Shown: positions 12 to 63,981, numbered from the stretch's first letter. The stretch is DNA of 64,000 nucleotides from Lepidodermella squamata (GCA_047495785.1 JBLDXI010000009.1:3162001-3226000); one strand, 5' to 3'. The notes: generated from the letters alone by a model not told the origin. Numbers and translations are program-made.

Positions 12-2442
12 ATGATGACCCTGTTCGGCACTAAAGGAAATTTCGTCATTTTCGACGCTATCATCTCCGTTGCCGCCCTAATTGCCCATTGCCTAATTAT
101 CGGCCCAACTCTACGCTGCAAATTGCGACTCATCGGCTACCGGCGGCTGCTTATCAATCTTACCATCGCCGATATTTGGGCTAGTACCGTGAATTTAGCC
201 TTTTTAGCCTACCAGCTTGGTAATGAGTACAAGCCTGATTTGGTTCCTTACCAGAAGTGCGGCGCTAATTTACTGCGCAGCCTTCAGCTCACTGCCTACT
301 GCATTAACCTATTCATTTTAATCGGCATGAGCTTCGATCAATTTGTTGGCCTGTCTTACCCGATGAGATACTCATACGTAAGTGATGAACTGCATAAGTG
401 TAACCATCACTTGTTGATTGTTTCTTTCCCACAGCTTCTCAACACTCCATTGGCTAAATCATTGCCTTATGTCGCGTGGTTCATATCGCTTTGCATAGGT
501 ATGCATATCACAATCCCAAGAATAGTCAAATTCCGAAGACTCGAAGACTGAAAAAATTACAAAATCCTCGGAATTAGCTACTTTCGAAAGTTTCATCTTT
601 CAAAATTTTCAATGGAAAATTCAAGTTTTAGGATACAACATTTCCTTCCGATGGGCTTTTCAAGATTCTATTCCTCTCCCCTGAATCTCAATTTTTCTGT
701 GTTAATGCCTAACCAGTAATTAATCTCAATATTGCACGCATTTTTCGGCATCAGCACGCATTTTTCAGCGGTAATTTTATGAGTAATACTCATCGATATC
801 GATTTTTGGTATCGATTTTACAAATCAGCGATATTTCCAATATCACCGCCGAAATTGAGGTCCCATTATTATAAATTTTCTTATTTTTCACAATTTCCAC
901 TCCAGTTTCCTAGCACCCTATGCATGTCGGAGAATTTTAGAGGTAAGCTTATTGGATAGCTGAAATTAAAAAAGCAAGGATTTGTAAACTCAATAATGAA
1001 AATCGATATCGGTTATAACTTGCGAATACCGTCGATAGCCCAAAATATCGAATGCCGAAAATTTTTGATAAACACGATAATGAAAATGCCTGTTGAACGT
1101 GATGGCAGACAAATCTTTAGGAATCAAAATTTTTTTTAAATTAAAAAAGAATAAAAAATAAATCAACTTTATTGGTTTAATCATGTATTTGAACCTTAGG
1201 CATTGTTTTGACCATAATTGCTCATTTCTTTTTTTGGGTAACCATTATTGTTGACTTTTTTATAGCATTTGCTGGATATCCAATAAATGCCCTTAGCTAT
1301 TTTGCCGCAAATGGGGAAAATGTCGACTTTCGAGGTAGGTTCCATTTTCAGAGATAGAACTTGGTAGAACTTGAACCTTATTTTCCATCTCTGTATTCAG
1401 AAACTATGATCGAAAATGGACTCGACGTTAGAGAACAGCGCTTTCGAACTTTAATCGGACTACAGCAAGATTCTGGCAAAATGAGCTTGCCAAAACTGCC
1501 GTTAAACTTATCAGCCGCAGACTTATTGGATCACTTGGCCCCAGATAACAAACGGCGAGAATTCTGCGACTTCAACCTTCAGAGTAAAATTATGCAAGAA
1601 TGCTTCGTCATGCTGCTGACTGGCATCAGCTTCCTGATATTGCCGGTTACGAGCGGCATAACGATCCGCAAAATTCGAAACCATTTAGGAGCACTACAAC
1701 AAAGTACATCGAAGCTTTTCGTAACTACGTTCCTGCTCATTGGATGCTTCATTTTATGGTAAGAATTTCTGTGGTTTCAAAATTCTCTATAATTTTGTTC
1801 TCAATTTCAGTTGGGTGCCCTGTAAGTTTAGGCCTGATCACGTTTTCATGACAGAATTGTTTTCCTTTACAGTTATCGTTTTCGAATTTGGCCTGCTCAT
1901 AAGTTATAGTTCTAAGAGTGGAGACGGCTCGAAATGGCCACTCGACAAACTTCTTCCTTTCCAGAACTTTCTTCACTCGCTCAACATGTGTTACCCTCTA
2001 TTCGACGCTTTTATCTATGCATCACGAGTTCAGTCAATTAAAACGTATAGGAATTTTGTTTATCAATTTATTCAGCTTTATCGAAACTTAATTCCAGGGA
2101 GATTTTTGTAGCTTACGGCATTGATAAGTGCTTCAAAGTTGCACCTAGACCGGAAAACCCCGAAAGCCACTGCAGACAGGCGACGATTAGAATGGAGAGC
2201 TTGACCTATGATTCGAGGCTTCGATCTGTAAAATCGGTGGATCCTGAAAAATCGGTTTCCGAATTTAATGCGAAATGGGGTAAGATTACACCAGACTTTT
2301 AAGCAATGCAGCTGATTTTTCCTATTTAGATTTTGCTTCAGAATTTCCGTCATCGCCAAATCTAAGCAGACCTAAACGACAGGTCAGATCAAGTTTGATG
2401 CCAATATACTGCAATGGAAACGATAATCCGGTGCAAATGTGA
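12..2442 (+). CDS. Class A GPCR, array copy 1 (spliced)
   Basis: TM1-3 in ORF 12..551 (GYRRLLINL, ADIW, KCGAN, MSFDQF). TM5-6 in ORF 1361..1762. CWVP is completed by the 11-nt exon 1811..1821. TM7 YPLFDAFIYASR. C-tail reconstructed through GT-AG introns to TGA at 2440-2442 (least certain part). Confidence 0.9.
795..865. repeat. Fragment of dispersed repeat/MITE family A in intron of copy 1
   Basis: gatatcgattt..gtatcgatttt.caaatc.g.gat.tttcc.atatca resembles ~31716-31770 and ~34876-34930. caccgccgaaattgaggtcc resembles the family A terminal inverted repeat (TIR). Confidence 0.55.
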
Positions 2443-2669
2443 AGCCACTGCTCCTTCGTAATTGATGATAATGAAATCTCTCGATTTTATTTGACGAATT
2501 TCTTTGAAATTAAATGGAACTGTTCGATGAATGAAAATTGGTCGATTTTTGCTTTATATTTCACATATCTAAATTCATTCGGCTGGAGTTTCCGGCAGTA
2601 CGCAGTATGGTTCAGACAGGGCGCCCGATAAGGTCTAGTTGTGTAACGCGCTACACGAGTGCTCGAAAA

Positions 2670-2748
2670 GTGTCGTACCCGGGGATCGAACCCGGGCTGC
2701 CTTTCTGAGAAGGCACGGCTCTAACCTTTGAGCCACCATGGCCGACAC
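2670..2748 (-). ncRNA. tRNA-like / tRNA-derived Pol III element (pseudo-tRNA or SINE head)
   Basis: Minus strand reads GTGTCGGCCATGGTGGCTCAAAGGTTAGAGCCGTGCCTTCTCAGAAAGGCAGCCCGGGTTCGATCCCCGGGTACGACAC-TTTT. It has an A-box, D stem GCTC/GAGC, T arm CCGGG-TTCGATC-CCCGG (B-box) and a T4 terminator. Acceptor stem and anticodon loop are non-canonical. Confidence 0.7.
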
Positions 2749-5414: not shown

Positions 5415-7256
5415 ATGCTATTCGGCCCGAAAGGTAACTTCGTAATCATCGACGTTCTGCTCTCAATCACCGCGCTGCTCCTCAATTGCCTCATTATTGG
5501 ACCCACAATACGATGCAAAATGCGACTCATCGGCTATCGGCGGTTTCTTATAAATCTCATCTTCGCCGATATTTGGTCCAGTGCCGTCAATCTTGCTTAC
5601 CAGTTGTATCAGATGGGAAATGAATATGATCCCAACTTGGTTCCTTATCAAAAATGCGGGGCAAATCTACTTCGGAGTTTGCAACTATCCGGCTACTGTG
5701 TTAATCTGTTCATCCTCATCGGCATGAGCATCGACCAGTTTGTTGGATTGACCTATCCTATGAAATACGCATACGTAAGCAAAATCCGCATGTATACCCA
5801 GCTTAAAATTAGTATTCTTAGCTTCTCAACACAAAATTTGCAAGAGCCATGCCGATTTTAGTATGGACATTGTCGATTTGCATAGGTAATTTGAGTTCGA
5901 ATCGTGCAAATATAAGCGTAAACCTTTGAATATTTTTCAGCTTTCATCAATTATCCAATCAACCTGCTAAGCTACGTCGCTGAAACCCGTGAATGTAAGT
6001 TGAACTTTACCATCCATATCCACTGATTACTGTTATTTTGTTGATCAATTTTAGTTAATGATGTTTCAAGCGAGCAAAAAATGCGATTTTTCATTGACTC
6101 GGTTAAGAAACAAGTTGAACAGACAACAATGGCACCTTATGATTCACAGTTTGATGGGGACATGTCAATTTCTAGGTCTGATTCCGGGTTTTCAATGGCT
6201 GACTTTCTAGAGCAATTTGCATCGGACGTTAAGCCGCGAGAATTTTGCGATTTTCATCTTCCGAGTAAAATCATGCAAGAATGCTGCGTAATGCTATTAA
6301 CCATCATCAGCTTCTTCATCCTGCCAATCACAAGCGGGATCACTTTTCACAAAATTCATGCCCAATTCGGAGCATTGCACCGGAATACCTCGAAACTCGT
6401 CGTAACAACACTTCTTCTAATTGGATGTTTCACAATATGGTGAGTCCGTGATAGAGGTTCATGCATTGTCCTAACTTGATCTTATTACTTTCATATAGCT
6501 GGGTGCCTTGTAAGTTTAAGTCTCATTATCCTTTCGACCTATATATCTATTTCAATGTTCGCAGTCATAGTTTTCGAGTTTTGCCTACTTGTTGCATACA
6601 ACACGAATGACGATAACGGCGATGGCTCAAAATGGCTGTTAGCGAAACTGCTGCCTTTTCAAAACTTTCTTCATTCTCTTAATTTGTGTTACCCTCTTTT
6701 TGACGTATTCATCTACGCATCGAGAGTTCAAGCTTTAAGAATGTGAGGAGTATTCGATATTATCATAACCTCTCTAAAGCGTCCTGCATTTCAGTTGTAT
6801 CGCCGAGACATATGGCCTTTCGTTCATTGCCTCAAGAATCAGCAAACGAGCTGAGACTAATTCAGCATCGAATATGGGAAGGTCGGTTAGAATGGAGAAC
6901 TTGCCGATTGAGCCTGCGATATCGCCAAGGAATAATGCTGCTGAAAGTTTGGCTCTGGCCGTGATATGCAATACCGCATCTCCAGACAGATCTGGTGAGC
7001 ATTTCCATCATGCCGCTCAATCGTATCATGATTTCGTTTTAAAGGACTGCTTTTTCGGCTGACTTTTTCTACACCGGACGACACCACCAGATCGGAAAGA
7101 AAATCAATTTCATCTCAAGTTACATCTGATACTTCAGCAGGTGAAAGTGGGCCATTACTATTTCGAATGGATCAAGAAGAAACAGCCGTGAGAAGAGTTT
7201 CGAACCTTGCCGTGATCTGTGATGAATTTGATGAATCTCCCGTGGAGACCTCGTGA
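5415..7256 (+). CDS. Class A GPCR, array copy 2 (closest paralog of copy 1)
   Basis: MLFGPKGNF..GYRRFLINL..KCGAN..MSIDQF. 11-nt exon 6499..6509 (CWVP). TM7 YPLFDVFIYASR. Stop TGA 7254-7256 followed by AATAAA. Confidence 0.92.
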
Positions 7257-7929: not shown

Positions 7930-9782
7930 ATGGACCTGCGATTTAATCAAGGCTCGAAAGGATGGTTCGTCGTTGTGGACTATGCAGTTTTACTGGCCGC
8001 GTTACTCGCCAACTGCATGGCCCTGCACAGTGTCGTAAAAACCCATTTCGGCCTGAAAGCTTACCGCCGCTTCTTACTAAGCCTGGTTGCTTCTGATCTG
8101 CTCGTCTGCTTTATCAACCTGCTGAACTTCATCAATCAATCGTTCGGCGATCTACTCAATATCGGAGACGAGGTTCAGCCATGCATAACCAACTTCCTTC
8201 GAAGCCTTTTGATATTCGGGGTCTTCGCTAATCTTTACAACCTGTGCGGTATGAGTATCGATCATTACATCGGAATTGTAAGTGCTTGCTAGTTTAAAGA
8301 CAACTCCATGACATTCAATGGTTATTTCTAGATTTATCCTATCCGATACAGCTATGTAAGCATAATTTCCTTCCTCAGAACATTCTCTACTTAATTCCGG
8401 TTTAGATAACTAATCAAGGCCTGGCAAAGTGCGCTGTTGTCATCACGTGGGTCGCTGCTTTAATCTGCGGCTTTGTTGATATTCCAATCGTTTCGCTGCT
8501 ATACTGGGCAAGCAGCCATCAAGAAAGCTCCCCACCTTGGAGATCTGAGTTTCCAAATAACAGTTGTAATGAAACTTCAGATGAGTTCACGCACGAAATG
8601 GTTCGAAGGGAAGCTGCAGCTTATACCTCGCTGCCCGATCTCGAGCATGTTGACCTACATGAACTGACGAAAATCATTCAGGACAACATTGGATTCCTGA
8701 ACAGGTTTGTCCAAATTGTTCAATTTTACGAAAATGAGTTATTTACTTTTCTATTAGGTCATTACTAAATAAGTCTCCCTGTGATGGGGACGAAGCGTTT
8801 TTTCAACGTGAGACACAATTTATCAATGAACTGAAAGATTTCGAATCGCGACTCGACCATGACATAACAAACAGCTGGTGTTTGTTCTCGAATAGCCAAA
8901 AAATATGGCTGGAACTTTTCGTCGTCTTCTGCACCGTCGTTTGCTTCGTCTTCCTTGTCCTGTGCTACGGCAGAATTTTTCGAGCTGTGAGTAATTGCGT
9001 GATCAATCTTCGCTAATTGCACGCTGTTTTTCCCATAACAGGTCGCTCTCGAAATTCGCGAGAGGAGCATACGCAAATTAGTAATCACCACTCTGCTTTT
9101 ACTCGGTAATTTCGCTGTGTGCTGGCTGCCGCTGATGTGCCTCGAGATAACTATGTGGATCATTGTCGCGCAGGAGCCGAATTACCAGAATGGACCCCAG
9201 CCAGACAGGTATATTAATCGGCTGAATGCTGAAAGCTGAATTAATATTGAAAAATCATATAGCTTGCTTATCGCGCACAACGTTTTCAACACAATGTTTC
9301 TATCCCATCCATTGCTTGACCCGATCGTCTACGTCGCCCGGTTGCCGAATGTTCAGCGCTACGTTCTGCGAAACTACAGCTGGCTATGGTGTAGGAAGCA
9401 TCGAACTCTAGACAACGACCGCCCGCGTTGCGAATCGAAGGCTACGAGCCAAATTACGAACGTGGCGAGAACAGCAGTTACGCGAAATTGCTCTCTTCTA
9501 TCGTATCAACACGAAGCTGAGAACTTTATCGACGGAGAAGTACCGGTGAACTATGGAGTTTCGCTGAAACCGATTAAATCGTACACATCTGCTAAAAGGA
9601 ACCAACTCCGTGCCAACTTCTATCAGGGCTTATCGAATGATAGCACTAGACCGGCATTAACCAGTTTCTCTGGAATCGCTTTTGATCCTTCTCTGATATA
9701 TATGCGGGAAGATAATGTGTACTACAACCATGAACTTGAAGAGGATACGACTGAACGGACACAGAGGATTACTAGTTCGTAA
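7930..9782 (+). CDS. Class A GPCR, array copy 3
   Basis: AYRRFLLSLVASDL, MSIDHY, 24-nt exon 8332..8355, WC..KIWLE, CWLP, HPLLDPIVYVAR. Stop at 9782, AATAAA at 9802 and 9818. Confidence 0.93.
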
Positions 9783-10075: not shown

Positions 10076-12073
10076 ATGAATCCAACTGGTCAGCGAACGC
10101 TTTATTTCGAAATCGGAACCTCAGTTCTCGCGGTGCTCGGCAATCTATTTGCCCTTCAAGGCATTGTTGGCGGTAAATTCATTCTTAAAAACTACCGACG
10201 CTTCTTGCTAAGCTTGGTAGCAAGTGATGTCCTAATTTGTATCGTCCGGCTACTCAACGGGTCTTGCCACCTGTTCTACCGGCAAACCGAGGAAAACTAC
10301 ACAGCTTCAGGCAGATACGGAGGTGACTACTCAGACAAATGTTACTCGGCCGTTTTTCGAAGCCTTCTCACATTCGGCCTCCTCTGCAATCTTTTCAACA
10401 TCTTAGGAATGAGCATCGAGCACTTCATCGGAATTGTGAGTTCTAAGAGAATTCCTCCTTAATTTATAATATTCTTTCCTTTACTTTTATTCTCTCAGGT
10501 CTATCCAATGAAGTACAGAATTGTAAGTTTTCCTACATAATTTGCCTTTTCGATTTTTATTCGATATTTTTGAAACGCAGATAATGGCAAAAGGTATCGC
10601 ACGCAAATCGATAGCATTAGTTTGGTGCTCGGCTTTCTGCTTTGGTTTGTTCTATATTTTCCAATCTGGATCAGTTGCTTAATCCTGTCCCTCTATCACA
10701 GCTTTCACTGACGTGTTAATCGCGACAGCGGTTTTCCACGGCAAATCTCAGGTTTCTTCATTTGCACAGAACCCATGCAATGCAAGTGAGCTGAAAACAA
10801 CACCCGGCTTGGCCCCTAGAAGCAAAATATCGCTGGAAAGCCATTTTTCCCGTGGAGGCGGTATTCATTTGAATAAAAAAGCGAGTAACAATTCCCGGAA
10901 AAAGCGGAGGAATTCCACGCGGTCACGTATCGTACACTTGTTACCCAGTACCCCTAATCCGATTTTGCTGTCAAGTTTGAATGACGACGACCTAGTCATG
11001 CTCCATTCTTTCATCAAAAGCGAGCTTCATTACATAAATCGGTCAGTGTTCAATGTCACAATCTATTCCAGTTGATGATATTATTCCAATACAGGTCTAA
11101 CGATGTGTCTTGCGTGGAGAATGAATCGTACTTGCGAGGGATCGACAGCCCTCAGCCGAGCGGTCAATCATTCGATGACGTGTGGCACTTCATTAATTCG
11201 AACAAAATTTGGACCGAGGCGATTCTCGAGATAACCGCCGTCTTGTGTTTCGTTTTCCTAAGCATTTTTTATGGCAAAAGTTTCCGCGAAGTTGACATAA
11301 CCTCTTCAGCATGTGATAATGCTAAGAGGAGTATGAGAAAGCTCGCCCTTACGACCTGGCTTTTACTTGGAGTTTTTGCAATTTGCTGGTTACCGTTAAT
11401 GCTGTTCGAAGTGTCTATGCTCGCCATTGCAATCTCGACTAAGCGAATGTTTTTATCCTCCTCAATGTATGAATTGATTAGGCTAATTATTCAATGTCTT
11501 AATCTATATCTATCCCACACAGATCGTTCCTGGTCTATGATCTCCTAAACCTCCTCTTCCTCTGCAGTCCCCTACTCGACCCTGTAATTTACGTAATTAG
11601 GATTAATCAAGTTCAGAAGTCTCTAAGGAAGAAATATGGGCGCATCTTGCAATGTCTGGGGCTGTCCTCGAAGGAAGAACTAGGCGTTAGCGTACTGGCT
11701 CGGCAAGTAATGCAAATCACCATCGTAAAAGCTGTTTCCGTGGAACCCACCGCCCCAAATCAGAGTCCAATTCGACAATCAATGTCAGGAACTGCAAGTC
11801 TGTCCAATTCAGGTAAGAATCCCTTCATTAGCTGATGAATTTAATAGCCAATATATTGCCTTCTATTCAGCATATTCTGATAACATCTCACGGAGAGGAA
11901 CTCGCTTCAACCACAATAGGAAATTGCGCAGAAGTTTGGGAAGTGCTCTGGAGGAGGAGTCTCGTTACAACCGAAGCAATAGCGCAGCAGATGAAATGTT
12001 CAACGAGACGCAGCTGACCCCGCTATCTGCCGCAGCTAGTAGATCTTTTGTCAGCTCATTATCACATACGTGA
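10076..12073 (+). CDS. Class A GPCR, array copy 4
   Basis: NYRRFLLSLVASDV, MSIEHF, KIWTE, CWLP, spliced TM7 SPLLDPVIYVIR. Last exon from 11871 reads open to TGA 12071-12073. Confidence 0.9.
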
Positions 12074-12683: not shown

Positions 12684-14448
12684 ATGAGCGCGCTGCTGAA
12701 CAGCCCAGAGGGTTGGTTTCTGATCGTTGATTCTGCTATTCTGCTATTCTCGCTGGTCGCTAACCTACTAGCCCTTCATGGCGTTTGGATGACCACGTTC
12801 CGCCTGATGGGTTACAAACGCTTCCTAATCAGCCTCGTTGTCGGAGATCTGTTCCTAATTTGCGTCCATTTATTCGATAAGGCCAATCAAATTCTCGTCG
12901 CCGAATCGATAGGAAAATGCTGCCGGTGTGCCACTTACTTCATTCGAAGCCTTATTGTGGTCGGAGTGTTCGTCAATCTATTCAACTTGTGTGGTATGAG
13001 TGTGGACCATTACATTGGAATTGTCTACCCATTGCGATATCGATACGTAAGCTAATTTTCCCATCCCAACTTCATCCTAACTAACTTAATATTCTTAACA
13101 GATGATGAGAAAGAAACTAGCTCGATGGGTGTTGCTTGTCATTTGGATTGGAGCGTTCTTCTGTGGTTTCATTGACACTCCGTTCCTGATGATGGGTTAC
13201 TACCAAGAATCAGCAGCGCTAGAATCTAGAATGGCGCATTCCTTCCTAGCCGATTCCATGCCAGAAAAGTTGGCGCTGAAAACTTCAAATCTGACCTACC
13301 TCAGTCGCTATTTTCCTAATGATCCTTACTTCTACAACCTGGAGCATAAGCTTAAGATAAAAGGGAGTATCAACAGTACCCGCCAGCTTAGGATCGCAGT
13401 CGAAACTCATGAATTTGGTCCGATGCCAGAGTCACAATCTCTTAGAAGCCCCGCAACAGATACGTAAGTTTGAGAAGCATTTTGGTCCATTCCTATTAAT
13501 CCAATCCTCTTATTTTAGGACATCCCCGAAGCTCCAGGTGAAAGTTCAAAACAAGCGACAGTTTATAAATGAAATAAGGAACAAATCCTGGGGTCTGTAT
13601 GTCGAGCAACGGGACAATTGGTGCTTGTATCTGAGCCCTCGAAAAAAGTGGCTCGAGATGATAAGTGGCCTTTGTGTCCTAATCTCCTTCGTATTTATCA
13701 CCGCTTTTTACGGGAAAACCTTTTCTGAGGTAATTTGGATGCTACCTATATTGAATAAGCCCCTACCTCTGATATTACAGGCCTCGATCGCTCTGAACAG
13801 GAGAAGCATCAAGAAGCTGACTATAACCACATGCTTACTGCTAGGCGTTTTTGCAATTTGCCTACTGCCTTTTGTGATATTTGAACTGGTGACAAGTACA
13901 ACTTTTTTCGGTGATTTTTCTCGCGATTACAGCGAATGGTAAGGAAACAGATTTTTAAACCGGACTTCTCTACTTTATTCCCATCCTAGGCTGCTCATAA
14001 TTCATAAAGTTTTCTACTCAATTTTTCTGTTGAACCGTATTCTCGATCCGATAGTTTATGTTGCAAGACTGCCGAATGTTCAAAGGTCAGTCCCACTGGA
14101 ATTTTCCTAATTGCCTTATGATTTGTGATTATTCTTAGAACTCTAATCAGAAAATATGCATCGTGCTTTCCGTGCCTCGGCAATTTGAAGCTCGCAATCG
14201 ATGAGCGCAATTCAGATGCTCGGAATGCGAGTGCCTTGGGTGGCAGCATCCACGATCGCCTGAGCAAGCGAGGTAGCACGATGACGGCGAAAGACCTCGC
14301 GCTGCCGATGCTCGAAGAAGCTATGCTGAGGTCTGCGATCGTCGTTATGACATCGAGTAACAATATGACATCTTTAGAGTTGCAACCTTGTATAAATCGC
14401 GAATCAGAGGGGCGTTCCCCGCTCTCATCCGCGGTCGAGAGTGAATAA
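12684..14448 (+). CDS. Class A GPCR, array copy 5
   Basis: SPEGWF, GYKRFLISLVVGDL, MSVDHY, KKWLE, CLLP (W6.48 replaced), NRILDPIVYVAR. C-tail in ORF 14125..14448. Confidence 0.92.
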
Positions 14449-14817: not shown

Positions 14818-16838
14818 ATGCTGACAACGAGTGAAACAAATGGGTTCACAGTGTTCAATTACTGCATCATCGCCCTGGCCATTGTCGGTAACTGTTTTGC
14901 GCTTCAAGGAACAATGGGCGGCAAGTTCAGCCTGGTCGGCTATCGACGTTTCCTGATCTCCCTTATTGCTTCAGACTTTTTCATTTGTGCTATTCGTGTT
15001 TTCATGTACATCAGTGCGAATCTGGCTGAGAAGAACCACTTTCATGAAGTTCACTACCAGTGCAGTTTGGCCATTTCGAGAAGCTTCCTAACCCTGGGAT
15101 TATTCACTAATTTACTCAATCTTTGCGCTATGAGCATTGACCACTTCATAGGCATTGTCTACCCCATGAGATATCGATATGTAAGTCAAATCCTATTGAA
15201 TATTTGAAGCCTAATAGAACTGTTGAGCTCTTAGATAATGGAGAAGGGAATCGCTAGACGATCAGTCGCCATTGTATGGTCCTTATCGGTACTAGTTGGT
15301 AAGACATTCCCTTGTGAGACTTGTCCCTTTTACGTTAGTGTTACCATGACAGCTTTCACTGACGTTTTTGTCTCATTCGGAGTTTATTATGGCAGACAAA
15401 GCTCTGCAAAGTCTGATCAGAATCTAAATACACCGACCCAAATAAGTACAACGCCGTCAAATATGGACTGCTCACATTGGCTGTTGGTTACGGCTCACTC
15501 CAAAATTTCGGCTCCAGCAACAACTCCGCGGACTAAACTCCCTAAATCACAGCGGAAACCGACAACTAAAAGAACTAAGACATCGCGAAGGAAGCCGGTC
15601 GACTCGAGAACAACTACTCAGAAAATTACTTCTACGACAACTGGTTTTGTCTTTGAAAACTTTGAGAGTATAGTTGAGAGTTTTGACTCGTCGGATTGGT
15701 TGGACCTAGATAAATTCTTTGGCGATGAATTTTCAAGGTAAGTCGATCACTGAGCCGGATACATTGGTTGTAATATTTTCTACAGCATTAAGACATGCCC
15801 GGAGTATCAGAACATTACGATGGATGAATCATCAATGGATTCGGTTGGTGTGATAACCAGGTTTGATTCCGTGACTCATGACCCTCGCGCTGAGAAGAAA
15901 AGCGTTTGCCACTTTATGAACGCTAACAAAATGTGGACGGAGGCCGTTATCGTCGTATGGGCTTTACTCTCCTTCGTAATTCTCACAATAACCTACGGCA
16001 AGTCTTACGCAAGTCTCTGCCCTAAAAACTTGGATAAAACCAGACGGAGTATCAAAAAGCTAGTTGTTACAACATGGTTACTATTAGCTGTTTACGCGAT
16101 CACGTGGCTTCCAGTTATGATTTTCGAACTGACGATGTTCTTCGTTGCTCTTTTCGTGAAGAAGAACGCGCTGCTAGCGCCGTCGACATACTACTTCCTT
16201 CACGACGTCCTCAACTCCATTTTCCTATGCAATCCTTTCCTTGATATCGTTATTTATGTCGCGAGAGTCAGTCCTGTTCAAAAGTGAGGAATCGTTGAAA
16301 TTTCCATGGCCCTCCTTATATTATTGCTTGATTTAGAGCTTTAATTGCGAAATACGCACATATGATGCCATGCTGTATTTCCAAGGAAAAGCGGAATCCT
16401 ACTGTTCGTCATTTTATTTACCGATTGGCCAGACCAATAAACTGCTCCCAGCCCAATGTGCTCAGCGGGGTCAAAGAGCTCAAAAGACTCGGGTCTTTCA
16501 TGGATCCAAACGGTAAGGCTCTCTCAAACTGTCAAGATATGCTTTATTTCATTTTCATCACAGATTTTATGAAAGAAGAAGCTCGCTTGCTGAATTGGAG
16601 AACTTTAAAGATTCGACCCAGTTTGGAGATTGCTCTTCGCGAGGAAGCAGCGTTTGCTCGTAAAAGTGGTCGAGACAGCCTACCGCTGAGTTCAGCTCGA
16701 TCCTACGACGGATCCGGAACTGTAAAAACCCCGGTTTTAGACGATCTACAAGAAGAGGCGAGTATCAACAGTCGGTCTGCCAGTATCGCCACTTTCAGAC
16801 AATTCGCTGAAGACCACGATAAAATATATAACGTTTGA
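14818..16838 (+). CDS. Class A GPCR, array copy 6
   Basis: GYRRFLISLIASDF, MSIDHF, Thr/Lys-rich ECL2, VCHF..KMWTE, TWLP, NPFLDIVIYVAR. C-tail in ORF 16362..16838. Confidence 0.92.
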
Positions 16839-17362: not shown

Positions 17363-17452
17363 CATTGTGTGACCACTTGCGCGTTCTAATTTTTTTCTCC
17401 AATGCTTTTGTATGGAGAAGTCATGCACATAGCAAAAAGTGGTCACACAATG
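17363..17452. mobile_element. 90-bp Tc1/mariner-type mini-MITE
   Basis: Perfect 16-bp TIR CATTGTGTGACCACTT / AAGTGGTCACACAATG flanked by TA on both sides. Confidence 0.7.
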
Positions 17453-23288: not shown

Positions 23289-25148
23289 ATGGGATACCAC
23301 TCTTTTCAAGACGGCGTTCTCGGCTTCTTCGTCATTTTTGATCTGGTCGTACAAATTCTGGCCATTCTCGGCAACTGCCTAGTCCTACTCGCCGTGGTGA
23401 ATGTTAAAATAGGCCTGGCTGGTTACCGACGTTTCCTCGTAAGTCTGCTGGCCAATAACATTTTTCTAAGCGTCGCCCAAGTGTTAATCGCCATCTACCT
23501 CGAATGCGACGAAAACATCGATAGGAAGCATTCATGCATCGGAACCTTCCTCGACAGCCTCAAACTCTTCGCTGTTTTCGCAGCCCTTTTCAATCTATGC
23601 GGAATGTCAGCAGACCATCTTATAGGCATCATTCAGCCACTTAAATACGACTACGTAAGTTTGACAATATACGACCTGAGTAGATCTATAGTTTTTGTCA
23701 ATAGCTGATGAACACAAAAATGGCTAAGGCTGCTCCTTTCATCATCTGGGTTTTCGCCTTTATATTTGGTAATTTTTCAGGATTTTACCGAATTTTTTCC
23801 GAATTGTTGTTATTAGGCTTTGCTGATATACCGATAGCTGCCTTGGTGTACTACATGTACAGCTACCGCCCTGTGACCACAGGCGCGTCGTATTTGGCCC
23901 TGTTCGAGGCTTTGATGAACTCTTCATCGTCAGCAGCAGCTCTCGTCGCTAAAAATCCGCAACCGTTCTTCGAGCCTCAGACTACCTTGGCCCCATACCC
24001 AACGATTATCCACTTCAAAAACCCCGATTTGTTCGAAACCACCCCAATGGCTACGCCATCATTCGATATGGACGATGCGTTTCTCGGAGACCCGTTTTCT
24101 GAGCTGAATACCCTGAAAGATATCGACGTCGATCTGTTACAGGAAGAGACAGATTGGTGCTTGATCTCGTTTTCTTACAAGCTCTACTGGGTTCAATGGT
24201 TTCGTCTAATTTGCACTGTGGTTGTTTTCGTGTTTCTACTATTATGCTATGGTAGAATTTTCGGGAAAATCCGGAAAAATCATTCGCTGTTGAAAGGCTC
24301 CCGCTCTGTCGATACGCGGCAAAGGGTGAAACGGCAGCGGCGGTCGTCCAGCAATACATCCCAAAGCAAGAGTGCAACGAGTACGCTAGCCGCTAACGCA
24401 GCTCTACTCGCGACTTCGAGCAACGCGAGCCAAATCAACTATGCCCTAGTAACCCGCAGACAATCGACTTCGATGCACAGACGAAGCTCGAGAAAATTCA
24501 TCATGACAACGCTGCTCCTGCTGAATGTTTTCGCTGTCTGCTGGTTGCCTTTCATCTTTTTCGAAATTTCCGTAAATCCCGAACTGGTGATGGCGTCGGC
24601 GCCAGAGGGGGATGAATCCAGTATAACTAGGTAAGGATTGTTTGATATTTCATAGCGAAACGTCTACCTGAATTTTCAAAGGCTTCATTTTCTACAACAT
24701 CTGTTCAATTCGCTGTTTTTGTCGTATCCGTTACTCGACTCGATAATTTGCGTCGCGAGGGTCTGCTCCGTACGAAGGTGAGACTAATTTCGCTTGATTG
24801 ATTTCCTGGGTGATTACTCGTAAATACAATAGGTACATCCATCTCATGCTGCTTGTTCCGCTCAAATGCCGCTCGGCTGGCTTCAAAAACAGCATCGGCC
24901 GCGAATCGACCTCGTTCACCCCGGTAAATCACAACATCATCAATGCGAATATCGAAGTCCTCAACTCACCCGGTAATCTCAACAACAATCGATCGACTGG
25001 CAGCGTCGGCTCCAGCGGCAGCCTCAGCCTTCAGAAATCAACCGGCCTCGCCCTGGCCAGGCCGTTGATCGCCGAAAATAATGCCAGAAAGGCCAGTGAT
25101 AGCGGCTTCATATACGCGGCGCCAAACCAGTCCCCAAGTAATGTGTGA
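23289..25148 (+). CDS. Class A GPCR, array copy 8 (long ICL3)
   Basis: GYRRFLVSLLANN, MSADHL, WC..KLYW, long basic/Ser-rich ICL3, CWLP, YPLLDSIICVAR. Ends PSNV*. Confidence 0.92.
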
Positions 25149-48708: not shown

Positions 48709-51023
48709 ATGAGTTACCAGGCTCAACATCCCAAAGGCTACTTTGTCTACTTCGACCATGCCGTTTTAGTTATAGCCATCATCTGCAATATTATTGTCCT
48801 ATCTGCAGTTATCAAAGGACGCTTTGCATTACATGGTTATAGACGATTTTTGATTAGGTAAAAAAAAATTAAGGAGGAGTTTATCATTATTATTTTTTCA
48901 TTTTTTAGCCTCGCAGTGTCGGATCTTTATGTTTGTCTCGTGAATGTAGCGACGATGATTTATCAAATCCAAATGGCCCAGTCGAACCAGGAAGCAGATC
49001 AAAGCAGTCCTAATCAAGCGTCGTCGATGATGCTGTGTGGTGCAAAGGTTCTTCGAACGCTTCAACTCGTCGGCTTTTTCGCCTCTTTGCTCAACATTGT
49101 AGGCATGAGTGTGGACCATTTTTTCGGCATCGTCTATCCGATGAATTACCAAGCGGTAAATTATTAGCCTTAATTAAATTAAATGTTATCCTCAATTCCT
49201 CCATTCATCGCAGTTGATGAGCAAGAATGCAGCGAGAAATGCAGTTATAGCAATATGGTAAGTTGAACGGACTTTTTCTTGTTCTTATTTAATTCAATTA
49301 TAAAATTTCCTATAGGGTGATATCGTTCTCGTTAGGTGAGGCATAATGATGCAATTTCCTGAGATTTTTAATCAGCGACACATTGTCCAGCTTTCCTTGA
49401 GATTCCGATAAATATCGTCTTATTCCGCGAGATTGAAAATGCTCAAATCGAAGATGGTAGGTCTATTACATGCCGTGGGATTTTTATCGCTAATGAAGTG
49501 TGCTAATCATGTGATACAGAAGCTCAGAATCCAACTCCCACTCTTTCAACAAAACAACTATTTACATCGATAGGCCCAAAGCTCGCTCAGCCGCGTTTCA
49601 CTAACTCGCATGGTCGTTTGTCGAGAGCAGTCGGAATCGATTCTGCTGAGTCTATTAACACAACAACAGTGTTACCGCTTAGCATGGATGCGTTTGAAGA
49701 GGAAGAGAATGACGAGGACGGGCGTCCTATGGATGCTTTTGATATTTTTCTCAAACAATTAAAAGGTCGCGATCACAACAGAACTGGCAACAGGTATGAC
49801 TACGTCACCTGACCTAATTCCTGACCCCATGCATTTTTCCCAGGACTTTAACCATCGAGGACATCCTGTCAGTGCTGCGTGATGACGAGAAGCAAATGGC
49901 AATTAAGGACGATGTCTGCACGTTTTTCAGCCTCAGTAAAATGTGGTTTGAAATGTGCGTTATCGGCCTGGCGCTGCTCTGTTTCGCCTTTCTCATCATC
50001 TGCTACGGGGTGATTCTTAACAGGGTTTCGAATCGCATGGATGCGCGGAAAAAGACTACGCGCAAGCTCATCCTTACCACTGTCATTCTACTCAGTGCTT
50101 TCATGGTTTGGTAAACATTTAGCCCAAATACGCTCAATTCGAGGCCATTGTAATTGCGTCCAATCCAAAGTTCAGAGGGTACTAAGGTTTTGTAACACTC
50201 CAACTGCTTAACAGGAGCTTTCAGGAGGACGCGACTACAATGGGCCCGAAATTGAGTTTTTGATTTCCTATGTCCTAACTAAACTTTATCTCTAACAGTT
50301 GGTTGCCTTTCATGGTTTTCGAATTCTCTATGCTGCTGGTATTTCAATCTGGGAACGATGCTTCGGAGAGTAAAGAAGCGGAAATATTCCTTGCTAAGTA
50401 ATATAAGCAGAATCCTTATAGCCTATATTCGATCGAACTAATTTTCAAATTTTACAGTTCATTTCATTTGCACAATGTATTCAATTCTCTGCTGATGTGT
50501 TACCCCCTTGTCGGTGAGTACTATACAGGTTCCACTCTGTTAATTTCATGGTTTTATTCACTTAACAGATCCTATCATATATGCAGTTCGCATTCCGGCT
50601 GTTCAACAGCCGATTTTGATATTAGTTGTCAAGTTATTTCCGTGCTGCTCTTCGACAACCTTCCGCTGGCTAAACAAGGCGAACCAACGCACTTTGTCGT
50701 CGAAAATGCCCAAATTAGCTAAAATGTTGAGTGCGGGAGGATCGATGCGCATAACTCACGGCAACAGTTTCAGCGGCTACTACGACCCAGTTCAGCGGAC
50801 TAGGAGCAACAGTATTAGGAATCCGTCATTAAGGTTACAACACGACTCAAGTACATTACGGAAGGAGAGGAAGGCGATGATTGACGTCAGTGACACTGCG
50901 GCATCTAATAATCGCGATGATACTTCCGCGGGTTGCTACAATGGAGGCGGTGAGATACTTGTTTGCGTTGATGAAGAGGAACGAACTCCTCAGACACCGA
51001 GGGATTCGCCGAGGCAAGCCTAG
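48709..51023 (+). CDS. Class A GPCR, array copy 13
   Basis: ATG 48709 MSYQAQHPKGYF..GYRRFLI|SLAVSDL, CGAKVLRTLQL, MSVDHF, 20-nt exon 49316..49335, KMWFE, CWLP, YPLVDPIIYAVRIP. Confidence 0.92.
50133..50256. mobile_element. Small foldback/MITE in intron of copy 13
   Basis: ctcaattcgaggccattgtaattgcgtcc vs reverse complement of right end ctcaatttcgggcccattgtagtcgcgtcc (~30-bp imperfect inverted repeat). Confidence 0.6.
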
Positions 51024-53402: not shown

Positions 53403-55290
53403 ATGTCACTTTTAAATAGCCCAAAGGGTGCCTTCGCAGTGTTTGACCTTACCGTTGTCTTGATGGCAATGCTCGCAAACTGCGTCGTCCTAGCCGCTGT
53501 GATACGAGGCAAGTTCAGTCAAACACAAAAGGGCGGATATCGAAGTTTCCTGATCAGCCTCGCCTCGTGCGACTTATTTTCTTGTGTCGTCAACTTGTTG
53601 ACAATGGTCTACCAAATTTACATGGCATCGATTGCCAACAGCAACTCGCCATCTTTCCTTAAATGTGGCGCTAATGTCCTTAGGACGCTGCAATTGGCCG
53701 GATTCTTCACCAATCTTCTAAATCTAAGCGCTATGAGCCTAGATCACTTCTTCAGTGTCGTAAGTTTTCAATTGAGCTCTCTTGCAACTCCAGCTAATCG
53801 AATTACATAGGTTTATGCTGTAAAATACCGTCAATTGATGAATGACAGAATATCTAGAATGGCCATCGTGTCCATATGGATCTCAGCCTTCATGATGGGT
53901 AAGACTATAATTTTAGCATTTCCGTATCCGATCTAACAAATGAATTCCAGCATCGCTAGACATTCCGATCAATGTCCTAATCTACAGAGACATTGCCTCA
54001 ACAAATGCTGAGACCTATCAACCCCCGGTACCTAATAATCAAGGTCAGCTTGTTGATGATTCATGCTAATTAAATACTTATTCTATTGTAATTTATCAGA
54101 TCAATTATTGCGGGGCAATTTCCTTGAGATGAAGCCTTCCTCCGATGCCCTTTTGCTTCGAATGGGATCAATCCCTAGAGCGATAGGGCATCAATCCTCA
54201 ACTGTAGTGCCTCTTGCTTACTCGACTGTCACTACAGCTGCCCCTCGAACCCCAAGAAGGTCAAAGTCCAAAATGAAGAGGATCGCTAAAACTTCTTTTG
54301 GGGAGCTTAATGCTGCTACTTCGTTGAGGAAACCAGAAAACGAGTCAGAGATACTCTCAATCGATCCAGCAGCCCCGACTAGGAATAAAACGAATACGAA
54401 GGAGATGCTCAACAAAATTTTGTTAATGCTGCGCGAAGATGAAGAACAGCGGATGATGGCGGAGCAACAACAGCAACATGCCTGCACATTTTTCTCAGTC
54501 AAAAAATTCTGGTTCGAAATGTGTATATTCTGCCTGGTCATCATTTGTTTCACACTTCTCATCGTATGCTATGGAGTCATCTTTCAGCGAGTGACCGGCA
54601 GATTCGACTCGTCAGGCAGGCGGACGAAACGCTTGATTGTCACCACGGTCATCTTTTTAGGAGCTTTCGCAATATGGTGAGAGATTGACGATTGAGCGAT
54701 TCAATTTTCACGGATTTCTTTTCTAATTAGCTGGCTTCCCTTTATGATTTTCGAATTTTCAATGTTGCTGATTTTTCAAAATATGGCCGAAGCGTCTAAC
54801 GAGTCTGGCTTGCAAAATGAAACAAGTGGCCTAGTTTAGTAAGTCCTCGCCTCTTCTGAGTTTTCTTGATCGAACTTTCGAAAAATTATAGCTTCTTTTT
54901 TACTCAAAATCTATTCAATTCTCTACTATGGTGCTATCCTTTATGTGATCCTCTCATCTACGCTTTCCGAGTTCCTGTTGTTCAGACGTAAGTCAAATCT
55001 TTACACATAATACAGTTTAATATTTTTTCCGTTAACTCAGGTTCATTTTGACCCACGTGGCTGAGATTTTCCCGTGTTGCGCCCCAGCAGCTTTCCGTTA
55101 CCTCGCTCGCCGTAAAAATACCCTCGCGCCCACCTCCAGCTTGAGGGACCCCAAGGCTTTGCTCCAGCCGTGCACAGATGGAGATGGCGCAAAATCGCCA
55201 CCCGGTAATAGGTATTCTATCGTTTGCCGATCTCGTGAGATGGATAACGAGAAAGTGACCAGTGTGAAAACCGGTGTTGTTGCTATCTAA
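53403..55290 (+). CDS. Class A GPCR, array copy 14
   Basis: SPKGAF, GYRSFLISLASCDL, KCGANVLRTLQL, MSLDHF, KFWFE, CWLP, YPLCDPLIYAFRVP. Confidence 0.93.
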
Positions 55291-58807: not shown

Positions 58808-61070
58808 ATGGACAGCATCCTGTACGGCAATAAGGGCTACTTTGTGATCTTCGACTACACCGTGGCTTTTTTCGCTATTATCGCTAACTGTCTTATCCTG
58901 TTTGCAATCACCCGATGCCACTTCAGCCTTCCCGGTTACAGGCGTTTCTTACTCAGCCTTACTGCAGCGGATCTTTACGTGGTACGTGCTTTTATAATTG
59001 CGGAAACGCTTTAGAGATATATCGCATTTAATTGCAGTGTTGTGTCAATGTCCTGACGCTGATATTTCAAATTTTCACCTCGCTCAACACCTCAGCAACG
59101 CCTATGATCGATCATCCTTACTTCAACTGCGGGGCGAATGTCCTCCGAACCTTACAGCTAGCCGGCTTCTTCACAAACCTACTAAGCTTATGTGGCATGA
59201 GCCTGGATCACTTTGTCGGCCTAATTTATCCGCTGAAATACCGATATGTAAGCATTTTTCCTTTTTAAGGTGGATTTTTAATATTTCTCGAATTTAAGTG
59301 GATGAGTCAAAATATGGCCAGGTTGGCCGTTGTAGCCATTTGGATAGTTTCTTTCGCCCTAGCATTTATGGATATTCCAATAAACGTTATTCTCTACCAA
59401 AACGTTGCCGATGCAAAAGCTGCTCCGCATGAAATGGAAGACCGCTCTGGGGAAACTTCCGACTTCAAGCGGCTGAGCCTATCGTTGAGAGCGCTCATGT
59501 CTGTTGAATCGACAACAGAGCCTGTGGTATCAAATGCGCATTCAATAACTGCATCCTTACGACCTCCCTCGACCGCTGCTGTTACCGCGTCTATTTCATA
59601 CGTGCTGTCTTCCGGTGACAAAGTAATCCGATCTAAAGGCAACGCCCACACTGTATCATCTTCTTCTCGAATAAGGTTTAAACAATTAAAATCCCCGCAT
59701 CCCATTCCATTTTCTATCCTAGTGTTAATGCAAAACTGCTTGGTCCATCTCCGAGTGAGGTGGAACTCACCACTCCGCTGTTTATCAATGGTGATTCCGA
59801 CAACATAACCACGACGAAAAATCCGGCTGAGCTGTTGAATAGAATATTCATGCTGCTACAGGAAGAAGAAGAAGCGTTGAGGATAAATCAAACTACAGGT
59901 CTGTAAGCTTTCGCATCGATTTTTGTTTTCAATTTCAGTGTCCTTAGATATATGCACGTTTTATCACGAAACAAAGATGTGGTTTGAAATATCAACTCTG
60001 GTCCTTGCGATTCTGTGCTCAGTATTTTTAACAATCAGCTATGGAATAATCGTTAAAAAGGTAACTCTTACTTCCGTGCGATCCGTAGCCTATCGATCTA
60101 ACTTTGCTTCGCTCAGGTTTCTGACAGCACGGATGTGTCCGGTAAACGCACAACTCGCAAGCTCATCTTCACGACTGCGATGCTCCTGGGAGTTTTCATG
60201 ATTTGCTGGATGCCTTTCATTTCATTCGAGCTAGTTATGCTGGTTCTCTTCCAGCGAAGCAACAGCTACATTAGCGAGACCCACAAAGAAAGTGTCCTAA
60301 TCCAGTACGCCATTTTCCTTTCCGATTTTCATGCATATAATTTTGGACATTTCAGATCTCTCTTGGTGCAACAAATTCTGAACTCACTACTTCGTACTTA
60401 CCCTTTGATTGGTTTGTTGGAGATAAATGTGTCCTCATTAAATTTAGATGTCTCTTTTTCACTAGATCCTTTGATTTACGCTGTTCGGATACCGGCTATT
60501 CAACAGCAGTTCGCAATTTGGTTTATCAAGACTTTTCCAAAATGCTGCGGCCCGTTCTGCCTGAAATACATAAGACCCCGCAATACCAGCCAACGTATAA
60601 TGATGGCTAAGCTATCTCGGAACTGCAGCATGCCAAGCATAGCGGCTCTCGAGATGACAAAAGAAACAGCTGTGGCTCTGCTAGCTCAAAGCCGTTTGCA
60701 ATCCAGTTACTCCAGTAGCGGCACGCCAGTGAGCATGCCGACGAAAATCAACCATCAACAAGTCGGCTATTACCCGGCTAAATCACTGTCGAAAAACTCG
60801 AGCGGTAGAAGTCTGAAAAACGAACCCGTTGTATCGAACGGAAAGGCCAAGAAGGTGAAAGTTGTCGATAGCCCCAAAACCAAAAGGACAAGTCTGTTTG
60901 TTCGACAGGCGTCGCAAGCTACGGAGAAGTCTCGATACAGCGATTCAGCTGATTTTGCGATTTCGCCAAACTATTTGAAGCAATCATGCTCGTCGCCTCG
61001 CCTGCCGTTAACGCGGCAACAAAACTTTTTCGACAGTTTTACCTCTGATAGTGAAGGTTCAAGAGTGTGA
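58808..61070 (+). CDS. Class A GPCR, array copy 15
   Basis: GNKGYF, GYRRFLLSLTAADL, CGANVLRTLQL, MSLDHF, KMWFE, CWMP, YPLIDPLIYAVRIP. Ends GSRV*. Confidence 0.93.
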
Positions 61071-61738: not shown

Positions 61739-62180
61739 AAAGCATAGAATTGTCTTCAAAAATATAGATAAATTAGCTTGGCCAATTCGATATTTCACGA
61801 TATAACATTCGTAAATCATTTATATTTGAACTCGCCGCACTCAAAGCACTCGTATAGATCTCGTAAAACACATTCACCTCGTAAAATCTCGTCTCCACTC
61901 ACCTACCGGCTCGTTCCGCCTCGGTTTCACTCGTTTCATTCGTTTTACTCGATCTATATTTCGAGCTACACTCAAATATATATTTCTACTCATGTTATAA
62001 CATACAAAGATAGAATTGCCCTAAATTATATAGGCCGAGTAGCTTGGCCAATTCAATATTTTACGATATAACATTCATAAATCGTTTATATTTGAACTCC
62101 GCCATGCTCGATTTACTCATCTCAACTCGTCGCCGATTCGCCTCCGATTCGTTTCGATTCGTAAATCTCGGCCGGCTCCG
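61739..62180. repeat. Tandem direct duplication (~267-bp period) upstream of copy 16
   Basis: atagaattg..agcttggccaattc.atattt.acgatataacattc.taaatc.tttatatttgaactc at ~61739-61842 and ~62006-62110, each followed by a CTCGT/TTCG-rich tract. Confidence 0.8.
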
Positions 62181-62256
62181 TTCTGATATTAACTCATATT
62201 ATAGCATACAAATATTACATGCTTGCGTTAGGATCATAGGTTTAAGCGGAAATCCG

Positions 62257-63981
62257 ATGCCGAATGACAGCCAATCGAGCTTTTTCACAGTTTTCGACAT
62301 TACCGTCGTGTTCCTCGCTCTGCTAGCCAATAGCTGTATTTTAAAGGCCGTACTCAAATGCCATTTCAATTTGACCGGCTACAGACGTTTCCTCATCAGC
62401 TTGATCGCAGGAGACCTATACTTCGTGAGTCACATTTGTTAATAAGTTGATTTCGAAAAACTGCCATCCTTTAGTGTGGGGTCAATGTGTTGACCTTTCT
62501 ATTCCAGCTGCTAGTCGATCTGAGTGCGACTGATTCGACTCGCCAGCTGAGTGCAGTTTTGGATCATGTATATTTCAAATGTTGGGCTAATATTCTACGC
62601 ACTCTGCAATTGGTTGGATTCTTCCTGAACTTGCTCAATTTGTGCGGCATGAGTGCGGACCACTTCATCGGTGTTGTGTACCCAATCAAATACAGATATG
62701 TGAGTTCATTATAGGACTGAAAGGTTTAAGGGTGAAGCTTCGAATTAATTTCAGATTATGAGTAAATCCGCTGCGAGGCTCGCTGTAGCTGCGGTTTGGG
62801 TCTTTTCCTTCCTCTTCGGTCTGTATCTAATAATTGATCAGATGAAAGTAATGCGATCAGCGTTTTTCATTTTTTCAGCTTTCGTTGACTTACTTATCAA
62901 AGCGATCACTTTGAACAGAACTTCTGATACTGTCGTAGCAAACCAGAACGATTTTTTACCTCCTGAGGATCTTACTAAGCCATTCTTTCAAAATTCTCAT
63001 CAAAGTCGAGATGAAAAGTTAGCATTTCTACTTGAAATGCTCCAACGAGAAGACGAGAGTTCTAAGGAAATCGGTATATCATTCAAACTAGCTTTTAGAG
63101 CCATTTTAATTTACTATAATAGAAGCTTGTATATTCCATCATGATACTAAAATGTGGTTCGAGTGCGTAATCATCTCGTTAGCCATCGTATGCGGAACGT
63201 TCCTCGTAATCTGTTACACAGTAGTGGTCAAAAGAGTCTCAGATGCAACTCGAAAAAACTCTTCGACTAAAAAACTCATTGGAACAACGGTACTGCTCAT
63301 TGGCGTCTTCGTTGTCTGGTAAATTTTGAGCTGTAAGATGACTGCTGGAATTTTAATCTCTTCAAATTCAGCTGGATTCCTTTTGTAATCTGGGAATTAA
63401 CCATGTATGTGATCTTCAAATCCGGAAGCGCTACGTCAAATTACAGTCCGATGGAAATTCCATACAAGGAGCAGCTATTGTCTAAGTTTGTCTGATTCGA
63501 TCACAGAGCGGCTTTTCTTTGAAATATCTGTTACTAGATCCCTGCTGATCCAGCAAATTTTGAGCTCACTTCAGCGGACCTATCCGTTAATTGATCCGAT
63601 CATTTATGCCGCTCGCATGCCTTCAGTTCAGCAGTAAGTTGCACATTTTCAAAAGCTTCCTTTCATGTAAATTAAATTTTCTTAAGGCAGATTCTGGTCC
63701 GTTTTGTCCGGCTGTTTCCTTGCTGCACTAATTTGTGCCTCAAGTTTCTAAGCAAACAGTCACACAAATCATTGCTGACCAGTTCAAACAACTTTTTCAT
63801 GTCAAAGACTAAATCTGGAAACTCACTCTCTGGGCTCAGTTACCGCGAGGGGGTGTTCAATATTAGGAGCCAGGCTGAGCAAAGTGTCGATCTCAAACCG
63901 GATATCGGTCCCACGTCTCCGACTGAGAAGCAATATTATTACAAGAATAATTTGCACTTGGGCACTTCCCACGATAGTTGA
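62257..63981 (+). CDS. Class A GPCR, array copy 16 (short ECL2, ~65 aa)
   Basis: MPNDSQSSFF..FD, GYRRFLISLIAGDL, KCWANILRTLQL, MSADHF, KMWFE, CWIP, YPLIDPIIYAARMP. Stop at 63981. Confidence 0.92.

Follow-up and report, generated by a model that had tools for sequence, protein, structure and literature searches.

A tandem array of 16 class A receptor genes with histidine or glutamine at the position of the DRY arginine in Lepidodermella squamata

We analysed a stretch of 64,000 nucleotides (nt) from Lepidodermella squamata (GCA_047495785.1 JBLDXI010000009.1:3162001-3226000), referred to below as the window, and found that it contains 16 multi-exon genes for G-protein-coupled receptors of class A, all on the + strand and co-oriented, none of which encodes the arginine of the DRY motif at position 3.50 (R3.50). 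In class A hardly any residue is better conserved than R3.50, which nearly all of these receptors carry and use for signalling; to our knowledge the natural exceptions found so far are individual receptors, most of them atypical. Class A receptors are already known to have expanded in tandem in lophotrochozoans; what appears new here is that a whole family maintains His, Gln or Asn at 3.50 together with a giant second extracellular loop (ECL2), and our literature searches on this DH family (DHY motif, H3.50, mollusc melanocortin-like receptors) found no paper describing it. Because the whole family keeps a non-Arg residue at 3.50 under purifying selection, it constitutes a natural experiment in class A function without the arginine. 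Our preferred explanation, to which we assign a probability of roughly 0.6, is that these are functional receptors in which coupling has been retained but rewired.

At positions 3.49-3.51 the copies read DHF, DHY, DHL, EHF or EHY or, in copies 1 and 2, DQF (Table 1), which places His at 3.50 in 14 of the 16 copies, Gln in two and Arg in none. These are exactly the residues listed by an earlier note on this DNA that had been made from the sequence alone. When aligned with HMMER, the His of the family falls onto the DRY Arg of the melanocortin receptors MC2R and MC3R, and the spacing to the proline of the second intracellular loop is canonical. His is encoded by CAT in six copies and by CAC in eight, and Gln by CAA and CAG; a single transition would turn any of the His and Gln codons in use into an Arg codon (CGN). 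This mixture shows that the codon has changed under a constant residue. No DNA is better conserved among the paralogs than a 78-nt segment encoding the end of the third transmembrane helix (TM3), including DH.

Exon 1 of every copy encodes TM1-TM3 of a rhodopsin-class receptor. In an exon-wise search, the exon translations match the Pfam family 7tm_1 (PF00001) with expectation values (E) of 2e-8 to 1e-5, and three single exons by themselves exceed its 30.5-bit gathering score (31.4, 30.7 and 34.5 bits). The same Pfam search of the window exons reported 7tm_1 and none of the nematode Sr families (7TM_GPCR_Sr*), as the earlier note had anticipated in setting the array apart from nematode sr* receptors; a weak Srx match was obtained with the open reading frame (ORF) of one relative. 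Class A membership stands despite the change at 3.50, where Arg belongs to a conserved motif but is not strictly required of a member.

Other receptor motifs are retained to differing extents. The motif Y[RK][RSQ][FLY]L at the first intracellular loop (ICL1) and TM2, which had been described as common to the array, is indeed present in 16/16 copies, as is W4.50, and D2.50 is present in 13/16. The CWxP motif is kept in 12/16, the others having CLLP, TWLP (two copies) or MWLP. The DPxxY motif that had been noted in TM7 is exact in 8/16 copies, and each of the other eight has a variant of it (DAFIY, DVFIY, DIVIY, DCCVY, DSIIC, DPILH, HPVVY or VPVIV). Position 6.30 is not acidic in any copy, so there is no ionic lock.

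The genes are intact. Gene models were built with a dynamic-programming predictor and then curated by hand, and 15 of the 16 give complete ORFs of 437-704 amino acids (aa), with copy 9 forming an open seven-transmembrane (7TM) core; we detected no pseudogenes among the 16 copies. Core identity between paralogs is 22-62%, with copies 1-2, 3-10 and 11-16 as subgroups and copy 12 as the outlier, which bears out the description of 16 co-oriented, strongly diverged paralogs.

To gauge selection, we used the proportions of nonsynonymous (pN) and synonymous (pS) differences. Among paralog pairs pN is 0.27-0.45 versus a saturated pS of 0.75-0.86, and copies 1 and 2 have a ratio of nonsynonymous to synonymous divergence (dN/dS) of about 0.08. 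As dS is saturated in every pair but copies 1 and 2, only the comparison of pN with pS and the polymorphism test are informative. In this test, the window was compared with public runs X1 and X2 between positions 12600 and 18599, where 39 single-base differences were found, 27 coding and 12 non-coding. The coding differences, which lie in copies 5-7, comprise 27 synonymous and 0 nonsynonymous changes, against a neutral expectation for the synonymous share of roughly a quarter to a third. Run X1 is also 2 bases shorter than the window at 13507; this deletion sits within a predicted intron of copy 5 (13464-13518), and the reading frame of copy 5 is therefore unaffected. From these comparisons, we conclude that the array genes are under strong purifying selection.

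Run X2 is cDNA-like, and its contigs contain the SMART cDNA oligo. They show GT..AG joints at 13047-13101, 13939-13989 and 14086-14138 in copy 5, at 15299-15352 in copy 6 and at 18477-18529 in copy 7, the joined introns being 51-55 nt long. A loose end at 18553 runs into the next predicted exon of copy 7, and X2 cover is zero in the intergenic bins 14600-14799 and 16800-17999. Taken together, the splice joints, the SMART oligo and the empty intergenic bins indicate that copies 5, 6 and 7 are transcribed and spliced as modelled. The earlier note had proposed an old, selectively maintained, lineage-expanded repertoire and had named dN/dS near 1 in silent genes as the outcome that would speak against it; dN/dS instead falls well short of 1, and expression is seen for three copies. 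Its proposal is supported by a pN below the saturated pS, by the 27:0 ratio, by the spliced transcripts of copies 5-7 and by the one-to-one orthologs described below.

Relatives were collected by searching 1.84 billion representative proteins with a profile of eleven first exons (A1) at E <= 1e-3, which matched 171 proteins. The best 51 of these 171 matches form a close group, whose residue at 3.50 is H in 35, N in 7, Q in 3, L in 1 and R in 0; the 20 members that we looked up all come from unannotated ENA metagenome-type or Logan assemblies. The other matches fall into a second clade, which is made up of proteins from molluscs and annelids (Owenia, Pinctada, Nucella, Pecten, Argopecten and Argonauta) and is separated with a Shimodaira-Hasegawa-like approximate likelihood ratio test (SH-aLRT) value of 98 in a tree of the first-exon region from which the 3.50 column had been removed. 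Position 3.50 is H in 87/93 members of this clade, R in 1/93 and another residue in 5/93, and TM7 carries DPxxY. Full-length homologs of the Owenia protein, retrieved without the A1 profile, likewise have DHY and DPIIY.

No solved receptor is as close to the window family as the mollusc and annelid DHY proteins are. They share with the family DH[YF], DPxxY, CWLP and a basic residue in the ICL1/TM2 motif, and differ in forming a separate clade, in having a short ECL2 and in an identity of only about 21-22%. Their scores exceed those of the best solved receptors with DRY by 10-30 bits, and BLASTP with the relative P0028 against them gives 65-74 bits. Judged from the unrooted tree and these score differences, the window family and the mollusc/annelid clade would be sisters. 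The proteins of Pecten, Argopecten and Argonauta bear automatic names such as "melanocortin receptor 5-like" or "adrenocorticotropic hormone receptor-like", those of Owenia, Pinctada and Nucella bear none, and for the DH family the name "melanocortin receptor 5-like" in mollusc genomes is misleading. Since position 3.50 is non-Arg in the close group and DHY is found in the mollusc/annelid clade, the arginine appears to have been replaced before the array expanded. On the sequences compared, a non-Arg 3.50 is a character of the family and not a property of this array. The statement that all copies have lost the DRY arginine is thus right in that Arg is absent from 16/16 copies, but the loss did not take place in the array, which seems to have inherited the trait from a larger clade containing molluscs and annelids. 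No orthology to a well-characterised family carrying DH, which would have spoken against the earlier proposal, was found.

Another organism has conserved orthologs of individual array copies. One-to-one pairs are formed by copy 8 and P0005 (SH-aLRT 100), copy 9 and P0006 (99), copy 10 and P0014 (99), copy 14 and P0032 (96), copy 5 and P0001 (95) and copy 13 and P0009 (95), and most of the duplications are therefore older than the split of the two organisms. Between orthologs, 3.50 changes from H to Q (copy 14 versus P0032) or from H to N (copy 7 versus P0008), never to R. Two oddities of copy 9, EH and DPILH, are both kept in P0006, which was also the only homolog found in a search with the TM4-TM7 exon of copy 9 (in a collection that lacks the source genome's own proteins). 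Metagenome-derived contigs of a related organism hold tandem arrays too, with first exons that are all DH, DQ or EH; contig L002 (1-20795) has six first exons, all DH, and on contig L004 (1-17372) the array adjoins a PLC-epsilon gene whose best local identities, 65-69%, are to Capitella, Patella, Lottia and Lymnaea. A feature search of the ESM Atlas with P0028 returned only generic class A clusters.

Among solved receptors, the nearest by sequence are the melanocortin receptors, followed by amine, adenosine and cannabinoid receptors. The exon-1 profile reached MC2R/MC3R in the PDB with E 6e-6, and P0028 reached MC4R with E 2e-9; a profile search of the PDB at E 1e-6 gave no match, and at 0.01 the melanocortin receptors came first. 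We modelled P0028 with AlphaFold2 from a 108-row family alignment that included the window exons, and obtained a mean predicted local distance difference test score (pLDDT) of 80.8 and a predicted template modelling score (pTM) of 0.81. With this model, Foldseek placed MC5R, MC4R, MC3R and MC1R at the head of its PDB matches (target-normalised TM-score 0.79-0.87), and melanocortin receptors filled eight of ranks 1-9. The hint of a melanocortin-like character in the earlier note was therefore well placed, as these receptors are the best solved matches both by sequence and, through the P0028 model, by fold.

Like the window family, the melanocortin receptors (MC1R-MC5R, class A alpha group, MECA cluster) have DPxxY instead of NPxxY and no Pro at 5.50. 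They have DRY where the window family has DH, DQ or EH, and identity is only about 16-18%, a resemblance that does not make them orthologs. In melanocortin receptors ECL2 is also minimal and a TM3-ECL2 disulfide is lacking, whereas in the window family ECL2 is about 52-176 residues long, the TM3 cysteine is invariant in the 16 copies and the ECL2 cysteine is present in 15/16, being absent only from copy 4. The loop is hypervariable and acidic (D+E 10-27%), with 8-30% Ser+Thr; between copy 9 and P0006, identity is about 16% in the middle of ECL2 versus 55-68% in the helices. Toward its end, 10-25 residues before the conserved Cys, ECL2 forms an amphipathic helix that is conserved and can be recognised, as with LLNRIFMLLQEEEE in copy 15. 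The N-terminus ahead of TM1 is about 10-30 residues long, and the third intracellular loop (ICL3) is short in all copies but copy 8. Behind TM7 comes VQ(K/R), then usually an intron and next the conserved motif PCC, which many copies follow with a Ser/Thr-rich tail.

We propose that the 16 class A genes in the window are functional and make up an old tandem array, belonging to the alpha branch and nearest to the melanocortin receptors. The array would be one lineage's own branch of a broader, uncharacterised family in whose ancestor His had already taken the place of R3.50. His, Gln or Asn would then have been retained ever since, even with Arg one transition away. Signalling would be retained, as suggested by the keeping of D/E3.49, W4.50, Y5.58 (in most copies), F6.44, CWxP and the TM7 motif, and of the helix-8 region, the PCC palmitoylation-type motif and the Ser/Thr-rich tails. 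The cytoplasmic switch, in turn, would be rewired through the lack of an acidic 6.30, the His, Gln or Asn at 3.50 and the invariant basic residues at the cytoplasmic end of TM2 (YRRFL). By analogy with human GPR1, coupling is probably weaker or different. The non-canonical activation or coupling mechanism put forward in the earlier note is plausible. Ligand discrimination probably lies in the long, acidic, hypervariable ECL2, whose Cys would face the conserved TM3 Cys, with each receptor tuned to a different ligand.

The family counts 16 genes in the window, 46 or more representative relatives and, from molluscs and annelids, about 90 representative clusters, and it offers a concrete panel of genes for studying coupling without R3.50. 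Its combination of an ECL2 of 50-180 residues with a near-absent N-terminus may also show a different build of the ligand-binding ectodomain.

Several points weigh against retained but rewired coupling. The expression evidence covers copies 5-7, and the RNA nature of run X2 is our guess, backed by the splice joints. Some copies have no Y7.53 (copies 8, 9 and 12), no D2.50 (copies 8, 9 and 12) or no Y5.58 (copies 1 and 2), so the change exceeds one residue. The tree is unrooted and spans 114 columns, and the A1 profile, which has His in it, gives DH proteins an advantage of a few bits. There is, finally, the behaviour of receptors elsewhere: the natural variant R138H (R3.50H) of the canonical receptor MT2 keeps melatonin binding and abolishes signalling (PMC9281605), and GPR1 is mainly arrestin-biased or scavenging (PMC8429170). 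These two precedents make the loss of G-protein coupling a live alternative.

In that alternative, the genes encode atypical receptors that do not use G proteins and act through arrestin, constitutive internalisation or scavenging, or as co-receptors or decoys, like the ACKRs, C5aR2 and largely GPR1. It would accommodate the absence of R3.50 from 16/16 copies and 46/46 close relatives, the never acidic 6.30, the missing Y7.53 or D2.50 of some copies and the long Ser/Thr-rich C-terminal tails, and GPR1, C5aR2 and the ACKRs all have an altered DRY (PMC8429170). However, the altered DRY was reported not to be the cause of the absent G-protein signal in GPR1, C5aR2 and ACKR2 (PMC8429170), and human GPR1 (CMKLR2, chemerin receptor 2), which has a native DHY, signals weakly through Gi, H3.50 contacting the alpha5 helix of the Gi alpha subunit in the GPR1-Gi structure (PMC11515964). 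GPR1 shares the native His at 3.50 with the family, but it is a single, sequence-unrelated chemoattractant receptor of the gamma group with no tandem expansion and no giant ECL2. Most copies of the array moreover retain CWxP, F6.44, Y5.58 and D/E3.49, and it would be unusual for a repertoire to consist of 16 or more decoys that are each kept as orthologs. Because the GPR1 and MT2 precedents point in opposite directions, we hold our confidence in retained but rewired coupling at the level given above and regard receptors independent of G proteins as unlikely, if worth keeping in view. We are more doubtful about a stably evolved activation mechanism of another kind, in which a rebuilt cytoplasmic switch would make the TM3 arginine dispensable, the basic pair of YRRFL partly replacing R3.50, and in which, in the branch of the window, the ECL2 helix would act as a lid or tethered ligand and the variable loop would sense the cue. 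A protonatable His at the G-protein interface could in that case also make coupling sensitive to intracellular pH.

The family could also be a chemosensory repertoire for external cues, an expansion of the lophotrochozoan type with ECL2 sampling the environment. Whether it is chemosensory is partly orthogonal to how it couples. Tandem, co-oriented and highly diverged paralogs and an ECL2 as variable as that of copy 9 and P0006 would suit such a role, and tandem class A expansions proposed to be chemoreceptors have been documented across 238 lophotrochozoan genomes (PMC11886862). Those expansions resemble the window array in consisting of tandem, fast-diverged class A genes, but they are reported to keep DRY and NPxxY, to have only 25-30 residues in ECL2 and no TM3-ECL2 disulfide, and to be defined by the lack of one-to-one orthologs (PMC11886862). 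The window family differs on each count, with an altered DRY, an ECL2 of 52-176 residues, both cysteines conserved and one-to-one orthologs for most copies, and no pseudogenes were detected among its 16 copies; we therefore consider a chemosensory expansion of this type rather improbable. Decay, with the lost residue marking a cluster of neutral relics, is scarcely credible. It would find its best case in copy 12, which has the longest branch and degenerate microswitches (Asn at 2.50, MWLP, VPVIV), but for the array as a whole it is refuted by ORFs that are complete in 15 copies and by the open 7TM core of copy 9, all in the face of saturated synonymous divergence, by 27 synonymous to 0 nonsynonymous differences, by spliced transcripts and by orthologs kept in another organism.

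We also considered the AqRho clusters of sponges (Krishnan 2014), which likewise consist of 2-8 adjacent, diverged class A paralogs in a compact genome. A sponge origin and kinship with AqRho were rejected, as the named relatives of the family are molluscs and annelids and the relative's PLC-epsilon is protostome-like; no named sponge protein was seen among the family matches that we looked up. Together with introns of about 50 nt, these named relatives and the PLC-epsilon gene suggest that the host is a protostome and probably a spiralian.

The window has a G+C content of about 40-43% over its 64 kb, and the positions of all 16 genes are given in Table 1. Introns are mostly 47-66 nt long, with some of 0.2-1 kb in copies 1, 9, 10, 12 and 13. 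Each copy has 5-10 coding exons, and intron positions are common to the copies but many have been lost or gained, so that the conserved splice structure claimed for the array holds for the shared positions only. Two intron positions follow DH[FY], and between them copies 3, 4, 7 and 9 (and probably 10) have a 24-nt microexon that encodes (I/V/T/M)YP.(R/K)Y.. and is flanked by introns of about 50-60 nt; in the remaining copies the upstream intron is gone and the microexon is fused with exon 1. Copies 11-13, 15 and 16 have an additional intron in TM2. In copy 11, joining YPLV to DPIIY in TM7 requires a GC-AG intron (donor GCAAGT), whereas the matching donor in its paralog, copy 13, is GT.

Table 1. 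Genes and other features of the window. The position of each receptor copy begins with its start codon; motifs are those at 3.49-3.51 and in TM7.
Feature	Position	Strand	Description
Copy 1	12..2442	+	8 coding exons, ~440 aa; DQF 336-344; TM7 DAFIY; 767-nt intron within TM4
Copy 2	5415..7062	+	7 exons, ~439 aa; DQF 5733-5741; TM7 DVFIY; 62% identity with copy 1
Copy 3	7930..9782	+	6 exons, 528 aa; DHY 8260-8268; TM7 DPIVY; microexon 8332-8355
Copy 4	10076..12073	+	~7 exons, ~550 aa; EHF 10418-10426; TM7 DPVIY; microexon 10499-10522; WH instead of WC in ECL2 (cysteine absent)
Copy 5	12684..14448	+	7 exons, 481 aa; DHY 13005-13013; TM7 DPIVY; three introns seen as joints in run X2
Copy 6	14818..16838	+	5 exons, 603 aa; DHF 15139-15147; TM7 DIVIY; intron 15299-15352 in run X2
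Copy 7	18087..20313	+	5 exons, 670 aa; DHF 18459-18467; TM7 DCCVY; ECL2 ~176 aa; microexon 18530-18553; run X2 backs intron 18477-18529 and microexon
Copy 8	23289..25148	+	5 exons, ~551 aa (3' end approximate); DHL 23613-23621; TM7 DSIIC; long ICL3 insert
Copy 9	29844..32848	+	EHY 30174-30182; TM7 DPILH; microexon 30248-30271; model introns of 628 and 1064 nt; ORF ends just past TM7, 3' end uncertain
Copy 10	36780..40416	+	~7 exons, ~520 aa; DHF 37161-37169; TM7 HPVVY; several introns of 0.5-0.7 kb
Copy 11	40709..43598	+	10 exons, 704 aa; DHF 41128-41136; TM7 DPIIY; GC-AG intron 42723-42774
Copy 12	45445..47769	+	8 exons, 437 aa; most divergent; DHF 45872-45880; Asn at 2.50, MWLP, TM7 VPVIV; open frame
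Copy 13	48709..51023	+	10 exons, 521 aa; DHF 49114-49122; TM7 DPIIY
Copy 14	53403..55290	+	7 exons, 519 aa; DHF 53742-53750; TM7 DPLIY; ortholog P0032 has DQF
Copy 15	58808..61070	+	6 exons, 608 aa; DHF 59206-59214; TM7 DPLIY
Copy 16	62257..63981	+	8 exons, 450 aa; DHF 62658-62666; TM7 DPIIY
Coiled-coil ORF, 279 aa	25484-26323	-	between copies 8 and 9; Pfam matches only sub-threshold (ADIP, SAP)

The array had been said to fill the window. It does not quite do so: a minus-strand coiled-coil ORF and several kb of non-receptor DNA lie between copies. Scans of the window for tRNAs and for Rfam families gave no matches.

Several repeats lie between or within the genes. Between copies 6 and 7, at 17200-17600, the depth of run X1 (DNA) rises 4-5 fold with many loose ends, one of which runs on into telomere-like (CCCTAA)n, and this segment is probably a dispersed repeat. 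A pair of non-receptor repeats of about 71% identity occupies the gaps after copies 8 and 9 (26662-27123 and 34327-34789), and an inverted pair, also of about 71% identity, lies within the large introns that copies 9 and 10 have (31584-31797 and 37805-38009). Short, similar ORFs in these repeats begin with MPFAGKHG or MPLAGKYG, and the pairs may be what is left of old transposons, or a small gene that is repeated. Directly upstream of copy 16 there is a 90-nt direct repeat of 84% identity (61744-61833 and 62010-62099).

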